NCBI GenBank assembly: GCA_943704425.1
Contig: CALSCP010002121.1
Location: 114,895-178,894 of the forward strand
Reading direction: 5' to 3'
Length of the DNA stretch: 64,000 bases
Source of the DNA: Ministeria vibrans ATCC 50519
Taxonomy: Eukaryota; Protista; Filasterea
The notes beneath the pieces were generated by a model that saw only the letters and a program-made list of their open reading frames with translations, was not told the DNA's origin and did no database searches. Position 1 is the stretch's first letter. Each line of letters starts with the position of its first letter. Below, piece by piece: positions 1 to 38,548 of this stretch. Position numbers and translations under genes: made by a program.

Positions 1-2181
1 CCAATGGAAAGGGAGAAGGGCGAGGTGCGTCGCGACGGGTTGTTCGCGCCACCGCCGTCAAGGCTACCCTGCGCCTGGGCACAGGTGTCCCCCGTGAACG
101 AACTGGTGCAGGCGCACTGAAAGTCAGCGACAGTTGCGGAGGACATGTCGGGCGACGAGTACTGCAGATCGATGACGACAACGGGCGACAGACACACGCC
201 ATTGTCGACCTGCGTCGAGAAGGACACGCTGATGTCGACCGAGCCGTGCGTGTACCACTGCAGCAGAATGGACTGCGTGACAGGGATGATGTCGACGCGC
301 GTGGCACAGTCGGAACCACCTGCGGCAAACAGCGTCGACGAAATGCCCAGCGCAGAGACAACAAGCCACTCGGTGGAGGCGCCCAAATCAGCGTTGGATG
401 TGACGCGCAGAACGCCGCCATCGGTGGACGGGTTGAGGAGGCCGTCAAACGAGAAGTGGAGTTGGTTGTTCGAATAGGCGTTGGAGCGTGTGATGGAGCG
501 CGCGTAAGGCTCACCAGCAAGGCACGTGCCAGAGTGAGCACATGGCGTCGACATACATGGGTCCTCCTGATTGCAGGTGGGTCCCACGTTGCCGGCGGAA
601 CACACACAGGCAAAGCTGTTCGCGTAGTCAACGCACGTGCCGCCGCGCTGGCACGGTTGCGACGCACACTCATCAATGTTTGAGTCGCAAAAGATGCCGG
701 TGAAGCCCGCGGCACACACACACGCGACAAAGTGACGCTGTGTCGTGCCGTCCTCGATGCAAGTGGCACCATGTTGACAGGGAAGCGATGCACACTCGCC
801 GGCAAAAGTCTCGCAGTTCTCGCCAACGTACGTAAGCGGACAGCTGCACTGGTACTCGGCAAACGACTGTGTCATGTTCAGCGAGGCCGTGAGGGTGGGT
901 GCTGCACACACGCCCGCATCGACAATGGAGGAAAAGGTGAAGAGTAGCTCAAAGGGCGCACCCTTGACACCTGCTTGCATGGCCAGCACACTGGCCGCCG
1001 GAATTAGCAGTGTCTCTTCGCGTTGCGCGCAGTCACTGGCACTGCTAGCAAACAGCTGCGCACTGAAAATCCCCCCAAAGGTGGCAGCGTCGCGCACATC
1101 GACAAACTCGGTAGGTGCGCCCAAATCTGCTATGGTGCTCACAACAAGTTTGGCGGGGGGTTCGGTGCTCGGAACCGGATTAACAATGAAGCCGCTGAAG
1201 ATGGCGCGCAAGGTTGACGGGTAGTAGACATTCGAGGAGAAGGTGACGGACTCGAAAAAGTTGCGACGTTCAAGAAAGCACGAGGCGCCATTGCTACAGG
1301 GCGACGACGAGCAGCCGTCAAAAGTTTCGCAAAGCGCACCATACGTGTCGGGAGGACATTCACAGGCAAATGAGGCAACGCCCGTCGAGTTGTTGCAGGT
1401 ACCGCCGTTGATGCAAGGCGACGACGCACACTCGTCGATGTCTTCAAGGCAGTGGTCGCCCCGGTAGCCCGCCGAACAGTCGCACGTGTATCCGCTCACA
1501 TGATCGTGGCAGGTGGCGCCATTGAAACACGGAGAAGAGAGGCACTAAAGTAAAAAGGAGTATAAGTCGAAAAATAAATGAAGTGTCTCAATCAGTTTGT
1601 GCATATGTACTTCGTCCAGGTCGGTTTCACAGAGGGGCCCAGTGGTACCGGGGATACAGGTGCAGTTGGTGAAGGCGCGGGTGACGGGGTCTTCGGTGCA
1701 GTTTCCATCGTAGAAGCACTCAATAGCGGCACACTCGCCCAGGTACGTCTCGCACGCCAGTCCCGAGTACGTTGGTGGACACTGGCATGAGTGGCCCTCA
1801 GGATCCAGGTTGTACGCAAACTCGCTAAGATGTATGTATATATAATTATACATAATTATTATATATATATGTGAGTGTAAAGAACAAAGGACAATGGTAC
1901 GGGGATCAGGTTTGACAGTCGGTGACATTTAAAGAGACGGCATGGGTGTACCATGAGAGAAAAGGAGCGGCGCAGACAAAGTCATTGACGTTGTTGGTGA
2001 AGGAGATTTCAAGAGTGAGAACACCTGTGCCATCGGTGCGATAGAGCGATTGAAGTTGGGCAATAGAGAGAGAAATGGAGGCAGAGAGGGTGTTGCAGTC
2101 GAATGTAGTCGACGAGAAGAGCACTTGGGTGATACCCAGTGCCGGTATTTCCACAAGCATATACTGTAAATCAATAATAAC

Positions 2182-2242
<61 letters not shown>

Positions 2243-4325
2243 GAGAGAGAGAGAGAGCGAAACAAAATGACGGAGAGAGAGAGAGAGAAAGAGAAAGAAG
2301 AGAAAGAAAGTGACAGAGAGAAAAATTGATAGTGAGAGAGAAAGAGAGAGAAAATAAAAAGAATCGGAATCAGTAAAACTATCAGACGCACACATACATA
2401 TACACACGGTGTATACCTCGGTGGAAAGGCCAAAATCCGCTACTGTGGAGAAAGAGAGCAGACCACCAGTGACGGGAAAGGCTCCAATGGGGTAGGAGAA
2501 GGTAGGCGTCTGAGGAGCGAATACGAGGGTGGTCGTGATGGTCTGGCTGGTGACGGCCAAAGCGGTGCACGAACCGCCGTTGCTGCAGGGTGACGAAACG
2601 CAGTAGTCGATGTCATGGCAGGTAAGCCCTGTGAAACCTGTGGGACAAAGACAGGTAAACCGGTTGCGCGACGACACACATGTGCTGTTGTTGCTGCACG
2701 GCGATGATGCGCACTACAAGGAAAATGAGTTTCACGCGCAGGTTAAGGGATGTAGACGAGTGCAACGGCGCCGTACCATATCGATCATAGACTCGCAGTG
2801 GTCGCCTGTGATACCCGCAAGACAGACGCATGAGAATGTGTCTAGATTAGACGAGTGCATGCATGTGCCGTTGTTCAGACACGGAAATGAGTCACACTGA
2901 AAGAAATGCACAAAAAAGAGAGCACAAACAAAGTATTAGTATTAGTATATAAAAGGGATCGACTTTTTGTTGAATACTTCGTTGATGTCTGTTTCGCAGA
3001 AGAGGCCGGTCGAGCCGGGAGGGCAGACACAAAAGGCGTCGGTGCCGTTGGCGTGTGTCTCGTTGCAGGTGCCGCCGCGCAAACAGGGCGCGGACGCACA
3101 GTCGCCAAGGAACGTCTCGCACAGGGCTCCCGAGTAGAAGATGGAGCAGGAACAAAAGATGGGGGGCACAGGGGAAGTTGAGCCGGCAATGGTGAGCGTG
3201 ATAGTGAGGTAGGGGTTGGTGCAGAACGAGTTGACGGCGACAGCGAAAGAGGCGCGCAGGGCCACCACGGCCGACGACGAGCGAATGCGTCGGATATCAT
3301 CGGTGGTCAGCGTTAAAGTGGATGTCTGTTGTGAGCAATCGTTGCCGGAATTGACAAAGAAACGTTGCGAGAAAGTCGGGTCGGCGATGGACACGACATC
3401 AATGTATTCAGTGTCCGCCGACAGGTCGGTGTTTGTCACGAGTGTGAGTGTGCCGCCCTGGGATGGAGGAGGCACGTTCAAAAAGGAATATTCTAAAATG
3501 CTCGGGTAGTGAGCTGGTTGTTCCCTAAGATTGCAAGACGAATATTAATAACAATACTGACGATGTTGTTTATAGCAAAACATACGTGAGATCCGATGAA
3601 TAAAATGTCGAAGCGCGACATTCGTTGCCATTTTGGCAGGGCGACGACAAACAGTCGATTACGGTGGCGCAGTGGGCGCCGGTGAAGCCTGCGGGGCAGG
3701 TGCAGAAGGAGGAGTTGGACGAGAAGTCGCAAGAGCCGAGTCCACCGCAATAGAGAGTGCTGCAGTCGTCGGTAATGGTCTCGCAGAGAGGCCCGGTTGT
3801 TCCTGGGAGACAGTTGCACTGGGCGGGACTCACGAGAGACTCGTTGTAGGCGAGTGTCATCTGGATGGGGGCGCACAGCAGGCCCGTCATATTCCGTGGG
3901 AAAGTCACGTCGAGCGAGACGGAACCGTCCAGAATCCACTGTGCGAGAGTAGCCTCAGCAACGTCGATGGCCACCACAGTCAAGGAGCAGTTGTCGCTGT
4001 CGATGGCAAGGAGGGCGTTGCGGTGCAGCAGCGGCGCCGTCACATTGACGTGGTACGACTCGTTCCCACGCAAAGCGTCCAAAATAGAGAGGGTCAGTTT
4101 CGCAACGGTGCCCTCGACGTTTGAGTAGGAGGTGTTGGCTGGCGTGGGCAGGGCGACTGTGACGCCGAACGTGAAGCCGTCGTTGTCCGACAAAGATTCG
4201 CCCAGTGAAACGTCTCTCTCCTCCGTCACCCCACACGACGCTCCGTTGAGGCACGCAGCGGCACCGCAGCCTGCATAGCCGCCTGTAGCATACATTAGTA
4301 TGCTTGCCACGGTGAGCAGCAGCAT
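1..4325 (-). CDS. Multi-exon EGF-repeat (Notch/fibropellin-like) secreted or cell-surface protein; 3' end lies beyond the window start
   Basis: Signal-peptide-like start [15 protein letters not shown] (ATG 4325). Many EGF/Ca-EGF repeats ([34 protein letters not shown]). GT-AG introns e.g. 3525-3585, 1825-1951, 1545-1610. Frame open from 1544 to position 1. Confidence 0.9.
2182..2242. repeat. (TAA)n microsatellite in intron
   Basis: Directly visible. Confidence 0.95.
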
Positions 4326-34322: not shown

Positions 34323-35787
34323 ATGCGGTCAGCTGCGAAAGTATTGTCACTTATGACGCTCATTGTTGCCACCTTAATACTCGTGGTGGGGTGGCACAGC
34401 CGTGGTGTAACGGTTGGAAGCCCCGAGGTGGAGAGCATTGTCGTCAGTGAGCGCTCTGCGTCACCACCGTCCATCCCACCGCAGTCAGCAGGACACGAGC
34501 TGGCCAAGAGCGATGTTGAACGCAGTCAAGTTGCAAATAATGAGCCTCCAGTGGTGGCAAGACGGGAGGAGGAGATCAAGGAGGAGGCGGAGGAGGACAA
34601 AGGGCCAATGGACGACGAGTCAAAGCGCATCAGCGACGAATTTCACAATTCGGGCATTACGGGGCCATTCAAGGGGGTGTACGCCCCGTCTCAAGTGAGA
34701 GAATTGTTAGACCTGTCACGAGTGGTGAAGCGTTGGCAGTTTGGCTGGAAGACCGATCCACAACTGAAGCATGAGCCTTGGAGTTTTTCGTGCATCGGCT
34801 ACAACTCGAAGTGTCTTCGCCTCGCACTCGAGCCACGCCTTCTCAAGCTTGTACACGCAGTACTGGGACGTGACATACTCCTCTTTGGAATGGAATGGGT
34901 CGATCGACGGCCCGGCTCTGGACACCTGTGGCACACGGACGCAATGAGTGTGCGTTGCGGCAGCAAAGTTGTCCTCAACGTCTGGCTTGGACTACACGAG
35001 GTCGAACATGCGACGTCGCCCTATGTAATCAGCCACACGAGCCGCATACAGAGCCTTGTGAGCGACATTCATGATTTGGGGCCGGTAATAGGCGCTTCTG
35101 TCGGGAACTACACAGATCCAGTGGTGACCAAAGCAACGAGCGTACGACATTAATATTTGATTGTTTCTCTTTGTTACAAGCAATGACGTGCCCTGTCTTT
35201 GACGCGGAATGTATGTCGTATTGTGTGAATTTGCTTCTCATGATGATGATGTTTTTTTTTTTTTTTTCTGGGGGGGGGGGGNNNNNNNNNNTATTAATTA
35301 TTTACAATTTTTCATCAATATTCAATAATTATTTTGTTTAGACTATGCGCGTAAGAACGGAAGCAAGGAGGCGGAGGTGGTGCATCGGGCGATGGAGGTG
35401 GGTGACGTGATGCTGTGGGACATGTGGACTTGGCACATGGCTCTCAACCCGCTAGCTAATAACCGGTACAACAACGCACACAAACGAGCGGAGGACTTTT
35501 GTCCTCTCTTCTGAATCTGCTGCTTTGCAACTCAATGATGTGTGTGTGTGTGTGTGTGTACTTTCAGACGTGCAATGACAATCCGGTACACGACACCCGA
35601 CTGTGCGATTCGACAGCCGCTGACGTACGAAACGCCCGTAACCTTCAAGGAGGCGACGCCACCGCCAACAGTACTGGTGCGCGACGGGCGTATTGCCTCA
35701 CCCGCACACGTTGCACGTGTCCGCGCGCTGTACCCAAACCGCAATTGGATTGCGAACGACGTTCTTCCCGCGCACGAGGGGCTTTGA
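34323..35787 (+). CDS. Membrane-anchored PhyH-family Fe(II)/2OG dioxygenase (HxD type), 3 exons
   Basis: N-terminal TM; WHTD, NVWLGL, distal WHMALN..R; one intron contains an N gap. Confidence 0.8.
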
Positions 35788-36041
35788 GTTTGGACCATTG
35801 AGCAACGCAGGTGTACTAATAATATTATTATTATAATAAGACGTATAATATTTTCATTATTTATTTTATTTTGACTTGAGAATGTAATACAGACAAACAA
35901 ACGCACATAAACACACACACACATACACGAGAGAGGAGGGGGAGAGAGAGGAGGGGGAGAGAGAGAAACAAAGTGATAGAGAGAGAGAAACAAAGTGATA
36001 GAGAGAGAAACAAAGTGATAGAGAGAACAAACGTGTGGGCG

Positions 36042-37124
36042 CTATGCGATAAAGGAAGTAAAGTTGTTGTGGGGGTGGCGGCGGAGGAAGGCCGAGTCGG
36101 GCTCGGGGACGGCTGTGCGGTTGCGCACAAGAAGGACGGGTGGGAGTTGGTCGTAAAACGTGATGACGGGCGGTTCGAAGTTTTTCGGACGGCGGATGGG
36201 ACAGTCGGGAGTGGTGTAGCGCAAGAGAAAGGCGTCGCGCGGTAATGCCGTTGGGTTGACTGTGGCGTGCCACGTGCGGAAGGACCAGACGCCTGCCCAG
36301 CCATCCTGCATGGTCGGGTGGAGCAGGTGGGCGCTGGGCTGGCCGTGCAAATGGGCATAGCGCACGAGCTGATCGCCGTAGTGCAGCAGTTCGCTCGTCG
36401 AGAACTTGCCCAATAAAGGCACCTTTACGGCTTCGTTCGCCATGGGACCTACCAGGTGGCTGTACGGAATGAGGTAGGGTGCCGTGTCGTTATTGATGTT
36501 GTTCAGGCCAATCCACACGTTGATCAGCTGCGACTCTTTGCAGTTGAGTGCCTCGACGCCACTGTGCCACATTTGCGACGTGTCTGGGGCGCGATGTACT
36601 CGATCGATGGCAAAGAGAATAAATTCGGGGCCAAGCAGCTGCTCGACGACATCGAGGACGGCCGGTCGCAAACCCAGCGTGCGACATTCGGGGACGTACG
36701 CCAGACACGACATGTACCAGCGCGCATCCTCCTTGCGGTCCGGCCCGGGTCTTCGCAGAATCTCCCACTTGCGCCACGCTTGTCGGGCCATGCGAATGTC
36801 GTCGGCGTCGAACGCCTTGAACGCCGGCACGTATCCCTTTTTGGCGAACATTTCCTTGAGCGGCATGTCTCCCGCCGCATCATAACCCGTGCGCATTTCG
36901 ACATTCTCTCCGCCTTTGGGGTGTGTGCTGACGACGACAGGCGACTTGAAAACGTGTGCAACCTCCTCGCGACGCGTCAGTGGCGGAGGGGGCGGCACAA
37001 CGACGTCATCGTCGGCACCGTCACCAGAAGCCCCCGTGCCCGCAACGATGAACCCAACGGCAATGCATGTGAGCACACACACAACAGCAACGGCGACTGG
37101 GATCTTTTTAAGGCGAAGGATCAT
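36042..37124 (-). CDS. Membrane-anchored PhyH-family Fe(II)/2OG enzyme with HxG motif (putative halogenase), intronless
   Basis: N-terminal TM; WHSG at 36558-36569; NVWIGL, LIPYSH, distal WHATVN..R; clear paralog of 34323-35787 (shared RYTTPDCxIRxP). Confidence 0.8.
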   Translation of the reverse strand: MILRLKKIPVAVAVVCVLTCIAVGFIVAGTGASGDGADDDVVVPPPPPLTRREEVAHVFKSPVVVSTHPKGGENVEMRTGYDAAGDMPLKEMFAKKGYVPAFKAFDADDIRMARQAWRKWEILRRPGPDRKEDARWYMSCLAYVPECRTLGLRPAVLDVVEQLLGPEFILFAIDRVHRAPDTSQMWHSGVEALNCKESQLINVWIGLNNINNDTAPYLIPYSHLVGPMANEAVKVPLLGKFSTSELLHYGDQLVRYAHLHGQPSAHLLHPTMQDGWAGVWSFRTWHATVNPTALPRDAFLLRYTTPDCPIRRPKNFEPPVITFYDQLPPVLLVRNRTAVPEPDSAFLRRHPHNNFTSFIA

Positions 37125-37344: not shown

Positions 37345-38548
37345 TTAAGCGGAGAGGGCTTTTTGCGCAGCTGCAACAATGGATTCGATGCTCTCCGCGA
37401 GCGACTCAAACACGCCGCTCGACTCGTACGCGTGCATGTCGAGAGCCACGTCACAGCTCTCCTTGACAACGCGCTCGGCATCGCCAGCAAAGCGCTGTAG
37501 TACCGGCAGACACGTCTCGGTCGCCACCGAGCCCAGTGCCTCGGCACACTCGTGCCGTACCATGGGATTAGTGTCTTCTTCCAGAGCCTATTGCACACAA
37601 AATACAAATCAGGTCAGATTGTGATAGGATTGTGTTCGCTCACTCGTTGAAGACCCTCAGCCGAGACGGGATGTTGCATTTGGCCAAGGACATATGCAAT
37701 TTCGTGACGAAAGAGAGCACTCTTGTCGTGGAATCCGGCGACCAGCGCAAGAACGCTCTCTTCACTGTTGCGGTTGCGCAGTGCAAACATGGCTCGGTAG
37801 CGCTCGAACAGAGGACGACTCGTGTCCAAAAGATGTTCACGTAACGTAGACGTCTCCAAGGGCGCTGCATCCTCTGAGTCAACGGCCTTTTCGCAAGGTG
37901 GCGCCGGATCGACACTCGAGAAGAGTCTGTGTGTGTGTATGTGTGTGTGTGTGAAACTGGTGAGAGATGGAACATGAAGGAGCGTACGGGTCCGGAGCAC
38001 CGGCTGCCTCTGCCTTTTGCGCCATGACCCATTCAACACGCTGGATTGCAATTTGGCATGTCTCTGCAACTTCAACGGTCTCGTCGTGTTCATACTTGCG
38101 CAAGACATCCAACACATTGGGAGCTGCGATCGCTCCGAGCGCCTCGGCCGCCTCGTGGCGCACCATTACTTGCTGCTTTGTATTGTCGAGTACGTCAATC
38201 AACAGAGGCACTGCATGGGGGTCTGTGAAGTCGAGGAGAACAGCGAAGCGAGAGGAGGGTTGAGAAGACGACGCGACGAAAAGGCGCAGGCACACCTTGC
38301 ATCTGGCCCAGGCAGTAGGCGCACTCGTGCTTGAGCAGCTCACTGTCAGAGGCAAACGAACGCGCGATAGCATCGATTGCAGCCGGTCCATTGAGCGTAC
38401 GAAGCACAAAGAGGGCACGAAAGCGCAAGGGAAGCGGCACGCGTTCGTTGGCGATCACGTCGCCAAGCTAAATCCAAAGAGAAGTCGAATCAGGATGCAC
38501 GCCAAGCGGAAACAGTACCTGTGGAATGACTACGTCTCTGTCGACCAT
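37345..38548 (-). CDS. DOHH: Deoxyhypusine hydroxylase (multi-exon)
   Basis: [66 protein letters not shown] (four HE motifs). Confidence 0.96.

Follow-up and report, generated by a model that had tools for sequence, protein, structure and literature searches.

An HxG iron motif in a signal-anchored PhyH-like oxygenase paralog of Ministeria vibrans

Introduction

What becomes of an Fe(II)/2-oxoglutarate (2OG) oxygenase when the carboxylate residue of its iron-binding facial triad is replaced by glycine? The question is raised by a locus in Ministeria vibrans ATCC 50519, where a stretch of 64,000 nucleotides from contig CALSCP010002121.1 (hereafter the window, to which all coordinates without a prefix refer) carries two convergent PhyH-like genes, gene A on the plus strand with the standard HxD iron motif and gene B on the minus strand with HxG. 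The initial annotation of the window read the pair as a duplicated hydroxylase, one copy of which had become a halogenase. The analysis presented here suggests that B most likely retains the ability to bind Fe and 2OG through two His residues, since it has kept both, together with the Arg that binds 2OG and the remainder of the family core, and that a two-His hydroxylase or a dead copy accounts for HxG in B no less well than a halogenase does.

The iron site of gene B

Gene B (36042–37124, minus strand) is an intronless coding sequence of 360 residues plus a stop codon, read as one uninterrupted open reading frame of 1083 bases from 37124 to 36042. Its proximal iron motif, H187-S188-G189, lies at 36558–36566 and is encoded on the minus strand by CAC AGT GGC, confirming in the assembly the Asp-to-Gly difference that had been pointed out between the genes, with A reading WHTD and B reading WHSG. 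The Gly codon, GGC, is one transition away from GAC. The distal segment from His286 through Arg296, WHATVNPTALPR (36237–36269, minus strand), carries the second Fe ligand and the predicted binder of the 2OG C5-carboxylate, and in the family alignment the columns of H286 and R296 are invariant or 99% conserved.

The family against which B was compared comprises 690 relatives found with HMMER among 1.84 billion representative proteins by means of a profile built from the four paralogs of the genome, namely A, B and two further genes, C and D; motif counts were taken from a hidden Markov model alignment of the best 150 of the 690. The family motif is H-x-W-H-x-D-x-E, with HxD found in all 150 of these best relatives and HxG in B alone. 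Gly189 aligns with the Asp of ThoJ as well as with the Asp of the 150 relatives, which bears out its assignment to the carboxylate position of the facial triad.

Two residues beyond Gly189, at +4 of the motif, B carries Glu191, and the initial annotation had named this Glu of HSGVE as a residue that might supply the missing carboxylate and so overturn the halogenase reading. Of the relatives, 92% have a Glu at +4 along with the Asp; paralog D also has this Glu, while A and C lack it. The candidate role of this residue as a compensating ligand specific to B was therefore rejected, as the coexistence of Glu and Asp across the family indicates that the Glu of HSGVE was inherited and is no new ligand. 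The corresponding stretch of EctD reads WHSDFE; there Fe is bound by His146, Asp148 and His248, and the helix beginning at Asp148 lines the substrate cavity (PMC2871039). The product contacts listed for the Sphingopyxis alaskensis enzyme are Gln127, His144, Thr149, Trp150, Arg280 and Leu284, with the Glu not among them (PMC6890836). The absence of the EctD counterpart from both sets indicates that Glu191 was not an Fe ligand in the ancestral state. In the AlphaFold2 model of B, Glu191 is located at the start of the helix that follows the HSG motif, and it may have become an opportunistic ligand after the loss of the Asp. The proposed role of the Glu is thus weakened by its family-wide occurrence and by the EctD ligand list, with an opportunistic role being the part that stands.

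Beyond the iron motif, B agrees with the family at 28 of 46 conserved columns and at 11 of the 14 that are conserved at 90% or more, to be compared with 28/45 and 10/14 for A, 30/46 and 12/14 for C and 27/43 and 11/14 for D, all three of which are HxD paralogs. Among the residues retained are H187, H286, R296, N290, W186, W204 and W285, in keeping with the earlier claim that the remainder of the cofactor site is preserved. Apart from D189G, the only departures of B from the columns at 90% or more are H184Q and the loss of one Gly that A and D lack as well. Position 184 corresponds to the 2OG-contacting Phe143 of EctD, and Gln is found there in five HxD relatives. In a quick maximum likelihood tree B has a terminal branch of 1.16, shorter than the 1.66 of A and the 1.71 of D. 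As judged from its sequence, B is without visible decay, because its column conservation equals that of the HxD paralogs, its branch is no longer than theirs and its reading frame is intact.

Fold and family

On its own, B gave no Pfam match at E<1, while phmmer matched it to ThoJ with an E-value of 0.0023. A profile of B together with its single-domain relatives matched, in the PDB, ThoJ (4e-19), EctD (3e-17), CytC3/SyrB2 (4e-15) and human PHYH (9e-15); GriE, SnoK and MysH were also matched, and the biotin halogenase BtnX gave a weaker match (2.5e-4). An AlphaFold2 model of residues 81–360 (pLDDT 88.6, pTM 0.87) had as its top Foldseek matches, each with a probability of 1.00, ThoJ, SnoN, PHYH, GriE, SyrB2 and EctD, and the ESM Atlas likewise indicated PhyH clusters. 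B is thus a homologue of the PhyH-fold Fe/2OG oxygenases, its membership being by transitive homology since B alone lacks a Pfam match while the profile of B and its relatives matches PhyH members of known structure. For the paralogs, exon 2 of A matches PhyH (PF05721) at 18.5 bits, under the cut-off of 22, and paralog C passes that cut-off with 34.6 bits. The proposal that these are Fe/2OG oxygenase paralogs is therefore upheld by profile, predicted fold and Foldseek.

Paralogs C and D lie elsewhere in the host genome, the assembly of which amounts to 29.7 Mb in 2860 contigs. Paralog C (G000:C2457:5743-7758, minus strand) encodes 671 residues with a signal anchor, a WHSD motif and a PhyH domain followed by a C-terminal Cupin_2 domain, while paralog D (G000:C2382) has at least two exons and encodes a signal anchor, WHGDIE and a Cupin_2 domain in its C-terminal region. 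A and B stop directly after the PhyH domain, without the bicupin. The closest named relatives outside the genome, with profile scores of 156 down to 106 bits, are four proteins of Balamuthia mandrillaris (KAL6056111.1, KAL6066802.1, KAL6078470.1 and KAL6078469.1) and one of Chrysotila carterae (A0A7S4BMN7). The Balamuthia proteins share with the Ministeria paralogs an N-terminal anchor and the cysteine pair Cys195/Cys308 of B, and have the PhyH plus cupin architecture of C and D, whereas all the Balamuthia and Chrysotila proteins differ from B in being HxD, and from both A and B in having a C-terminal bicupin. Set against the features of this protist PhyH-bicupin group, B has the anchor, the Cys pair and the Glu and is without the Asp and the bicupin.

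The four paralogs group with the Balamuthia proteins with weak support in the tree (SH-aLRT 84), in which exon 1 alone stood for A and exon 2 alone for D, and from which the relatives ranked 71–150, a metagenome fragment 99% identical to C (P0001), exons 2–3 of A and exon 1 of D were left out. A and B appear to belong to an uncharacterised, patchy protist clade of PhyH-like Fe(II)/2OG oxygenases, in which A is a standard 2-His-1-Asp member.

Membrane anchor and topology

All four paralogs have an N-terminal hydrophobic stretch of 19 residues with a Kyte-Doolittle mean of 2.0–2.95, preceded by one to three Lys/Arg residues and followed by a Pro- or acid-rich stem, in agreement with the membrane anchors originally described for A and B. 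In B the signal anchor comprises residues 10–28, VAVAVVCVLTCIAVGFIVA (37041–37097, minus strand; mean 2.95 over 19 residues), with R4, K6 and K7 before it and GDGADDD and an acidic, Pro-rich stem after it. Similar N-terminal anchors are found in the Balamuthia relatives and in the relatives P0004 and P0026. The Cys195/Cys308 pair of B is common to the Balamuthia proteins and P0004 and occurs in only about one sixth of all relatives, while a second pair, Cys140/Cys147, is specific to the four paralogs of this genome. B also has three N-x-S/T sequons. From these features a type II orientation can reasonably be inferred, with the catalytic domain directed toward the lumen of the endoplasmic reticulum (ER) and Golgi or toward the cell exterior. 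The initial annotation knew of no such location for this class of enzyme, for which AspH offers a precedent, being anchored in the ER membrane with its oxygenase domain in the lumen (PMC6817910).

Search for orthologs of gene B

No ortholog of B was found by a word-based homolog search or by the HMMER search of 1.84 billion proteins, and an exact look-up of B in public assemblies gave no match, in collections from which records of Ministeria or a very near genome may be absent. A protein-guided scan and a 23-base DNA pattern allowing either GGC or GAC likewise found nothing in the JGI metagenomes. The only very strong HMMER match was P0001. In the European Nucleotide Archive, scaffold_15445 of ERZ23497376 (1132 bases) encodes a fragment 99% identical to paralog C, which indicates that Ministeria or a very close relative is present in that sample.

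Comparison with known systems

Three sets of enzymes bear on how HxG in B is to be read. AspH resembles B in its ER-membrane anchor, its luminal Fe/2OG domain and its two-His iron site without a carboxylate, to the extent that the topology of B is deduced from its sequence and its site from HxG. The metal of AspH is held by His679 and His725 only, and the enzyme hydroxylates epidermal growth factor (EGF) domains and has no halogenase activity with chloride; in a further 2OG oxygenase, FIH, the D201G variant is a viable hydroxylase (PMC6817910). AspH differs from B in belonging to another 2OG oxygenase family, in having a tetratricopeptide repeat domain and in acting on EGF domains, and no AspH entry occurs among the listed sequence and fold matches of B, all of which are PhyH-type. 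AspH is therefore an analogue, not a homologue, of B.

The best profile and Foldseek matches of B are hydroxylases of the PhyH fold, that is ThoJ (6zyk/6zyl), EctD (3emr, 4mhr), human PHYH (2a1x), GriE, SnoK/SnoN and MysH, which have in common with it the double-stranded beta-helix fold and the WHxD...WH...R layout, with the WHSDFE signature of EctD paralleling the WHxDxE of the family. In contrast to B, ThoJ and EctD have Asp at the position of Gly189, and none of the PhyH-fold hydroxylases is described as membrane-anchored, while B carries such an anchor as well as additional cysteines; its identity to them is 13–20%. The PhyH fold class also includes the halogenases SyrB2 (2fct), CytC3 (3gja) and BtnX (9pv1), in which, as in B, a small residue stands in for the carboxylate ligand (Ala in SyrB2 and CytC3). 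Carrier-protein-tethered amino acids are the substrates of SyrB2 and CytC3, and free biotin is that of BtnX. These halogenases are bacterial, unlike B, which is no closer to them than to the hydroxylases.

The plant dechloroacutumine halogenase DAH offers a parallel in that a eukaryotic HxD gene was duplicated nearby and one copy gained HxG (PMC12346261). It differs from the present case in belonging to another 2OG family (2ODD/FLS type) and in stemming from a recent duplication at 64–95% identity, as against 25–39% for A and B. At the DAH locus there is also DAH-like, an HxG paralog that is non-functional (PMC12346261). On a wider scale, Kipouros and Chang combined the 2His-Gly/Ala motif with the absence of a nearby carboxylate in three dimensions and obtained 946 candidates from about 457,000 models, which include several unexplored eukaryotic families and two of which were validated (PMC13489965).

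The function of gene B

The reading preferred here, to which a probability of roughly 0.4 is given, is that B may be a catalytically competent oxygenase with a two-His or a His2-Glu191 iron site that does not halogenate. It would oxidise or hydroxylate a luminal substrate, as the two-His ER hydroxylase AspH does, with water, substrate or possibly Glu191 occupying the vacated carboxylate position. Several points weigh against this. Replacement of the Asp by Gly or Ala inactivates many 2OG hydroxylases, and its invariance in the 150 best relatives suggests that it is needed for activity in this family. The Gly is accompanied by H184Q at a 2OG-contacting position, the searches returned no ortholog, and the known two-His members of the PhyH fold, SyrB2 and CytC3 (PMC6817910) and BtnX (PMC13489965), are all halogenases.

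It is somewhat doubtful, if by no means far-fetched, that B is instead a non-catalytic paralog, in which loss of the carboxylate ended turnover and which either survives through a binding, regulatory or scaffolding role, for example as a partner of A, or is decaying. The invariance of the Asp favours this, as do the restriction of B to a single lineage and a single gene and the precedent of the non-functional DAH-like protein (PMC12346261). In addition, by a rough calculation, the chance that 3–5 cofactor residues would still be kept is about 0.2–0.3 if the loss occurred at a random point on the B branch. Against a dead copy stand the retention of both His residues, the Arg and 11 of the 14 near-invariant columns despite divergence to 25–33% identity, together with an intact reading frame and a branch no longer than those of the HxD paralogs. 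That the Gly instead reflects a mistake in the assembly or a rare allele, with GAC as the true codon and B an ordinary HxD hydroxylase, is very improbable. It would take a single transition in a draft of 2860 contigs, with an assembly gap and homopolymer artefacts 1.3 kb away, but the coding sequence around the codon is clean and non-repetitive, an error at precisely this position should have a very small prior when set against the frequency of real catalytic-residue substitutions in paralogs, and the nearby H184Q suggests a remodelled site.

The data neither support nor contradict the halogenase reading, in which the vacant site would bind chloride or bromide, an Fe(IV)-oxo species would abstract hydrogen and the halogen would rebound onto a luminal lipid, glycan or peptide, and such a function for B is considered unlikely. 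The 2His-1Gly/Ala motif is that of all known Fe/2OG halogenases and has been a successful marker for their discovery, and such enzymes appear sporadically within hydroxylase families (PMC13489965). The fold class of B includes SyrB2, CytC3 and BtnX, its cofactor residues are kept, the EctD counterpart of its +4 Glu is listed neither as an Fe ligand nor as a product contact, and DAH too was derived from a tandem HxD duplicate (PMC12346261). On the other side, AspH has an equal two-His site in the same compartment and does not halogenate with chloride, and FIH D201G stays a hydroxylase (PMC6817910), while the switch to DAH required further substitutions and insertions beyond the change from Asp to Gly (PMC12346261). 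Moreover, B has no biosynthetic context and no ortholog was found in which the Gly could be seen to be conserved, and Glu191 is only two residues from the Gly whereas the discovery criterion demands that there be no nearby carboxylate (PMC13489965). The step from HxG to halogenase taken in the initial annotation does not hold as a rule, with AspH and FIH D201G (PMC6817910) and DAH-like (PMC12346261) as counterexamples. The full proposal, that B would be a working radical halogenase in a membrane of the secretory pathway and would add chlorine or bromine to a lipid, glycan or protein of the lumen or the cell surface, is judged improbable.

Significance and hints at the substrate

Should B be active, only AspH would precede it as a natural kind of luminal two-His 2OG oxygenase, and it would be the first such oxygenase of the PhyH fold in the secretory pathway. 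Should it halogenate, it would provide a new cellular setting for radical halogenation, being the first membrane-anchored luminal Fe/2OG halogenase as far as the literature cited here goes, and would represent the conversion of a hydroxylase into a halogenase inside a eukaryotic PhyH clade. Expectations are tempered by the fact that 2His-Gly/Ala candidates have already been catalogued by the hundreds, with eukaryotic families among them (PMC13489965), and that the case of B consists of a single codon in a draft assembly and of a gene without a detected ortholog. Apart from B, the analysis defines an uncharacterised and patchy protist clade of signal-anchored PhyH(-bicupin) enzymes in this genome, Balamuthia and a haptophyte.

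As to the substrate, paralog C converges on a gene for a GT8 glycosyltransferase of 635 residues (L012:3121-5028). In the gene neighbourhoods of two bacterial relatives, P0155 and P0009, a PhyH-bicupin gene adjoins UDP-glycosyltransferase and sphingolipid-type desaturase genes, and a single-domain relative adjoins polysaccharide deacetylase, GT4 and TupA-type ATP-grasp genes. These three neighbourhoods, which are anecdotes, point loosely to glycoconjugate substrates.

Relationship of genes A and B

The stop codons of A and B are separated by 254 bases. In BLASTP comparisons exon 1 of A matches residues 51–257 of B with 25% identity over 212 residues (E 8e-22), exon 2 matches residues 256–293 with 37% identity (E 2e-7) and exon 3 matches residues 298–357 with 39% identity (E 4e-10), the three matches being collinear on B. 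The 13-residue segments GHLWHTDAMSVRC and SQMWHSGVEALNC sit within one ungapped block of the alignment of exon 1 with B, so that the description of A and B as convergent paralogs whose iron motifs align without gaps is well founded. A simple, recent duplication is another matter: the identity of 25–39% and a tree without a resolved sister pairing of A and B do not support a recent tandem duplicate, and this candidate history was set aside. The claim that both proteins keep the distal His and Arg holds for the His in both and for R296 of B, while the Arg of A depends on the splice model.

Structure of gene A

Exon 1 of A (34323–35141, plus strand) encodes the signal anchor, the stem and the N-terminal half of the PhyH-like domain, including the standard HxD motif H204-T205-D206 at 34932–34940. 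Exon 2, the 5′ bound of which is provisional at about 35342, extends to 35465 and encodes the distal His at 35434–35436, and exon 3 (35568–35787) includes the stop codon and the conserved cysteine of a TTPDC motif. The second intron, with GT at 35466 and AG at 35566–35567, is of phase 2 and keeps the frame; the codon of the 2OG-binding Arg is split by the predicted exon 2/3 junction (CG|A), the first base of exon 3 completing it. The exons of A and D were kept as separate rows in the searches, alignments and tree.

The first intron of A (35142–35341, provisional bounds) is less straightforward. Its donor at 35142 (GTACGA) has the GTAC form of other introns of these paralogs, among them the first intron of D between exons at L004:887-1321 and 1519-3003, which runs from a GTAC donor (GT at 1322) to a TTAG acceptor (AG at 1517-1518). 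The sole AG behind a T-rich tract, at 35340–35341, is out of phase with GT35142 by one base, and the frame would be kept either by GT35142 with AG35355 or by pairing the AG that ends at 35341 with a GC donor at 35140. There may be a one-base assembly error near the gap at 35282–35291 that lies within this intron beside runs of T16 and G12, or an unusual splice site, or the gene may be broken; the doubt over the exon 1/2 junction leaves both iron motifs untouched. The sequence at 35230–35300, in which a T16 run, CT and a G12 run lead directly into the gap of 10 N, resembles an assembly or sequencing artefact rather than biology. A coding exon hidden in the gap was considered and ruled out, because the pieces of A on either side of it abut on the B sequence (residues 51–257 and 256–293) and no coding block is missing.

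Other features of the locus

Within the spacer between A and B, positions 35929–36031 contain purine-rich tandem repeats, with a 15-base unit present in 2.5 copies and a 20–22-base unit in 3.3 copies. Immediately upstream of B and on the same strand lies a multi-exon gene (37345–38418, minus strand) encoding PBS-lyase/HEAT repeats with repeated RHE(A/C)AEALG motifs. The HEAT repeats are the feature that was tested; the product seems to resemble deoxyhypusine hydroxylase, which is another non-haem iron hydroxylase.

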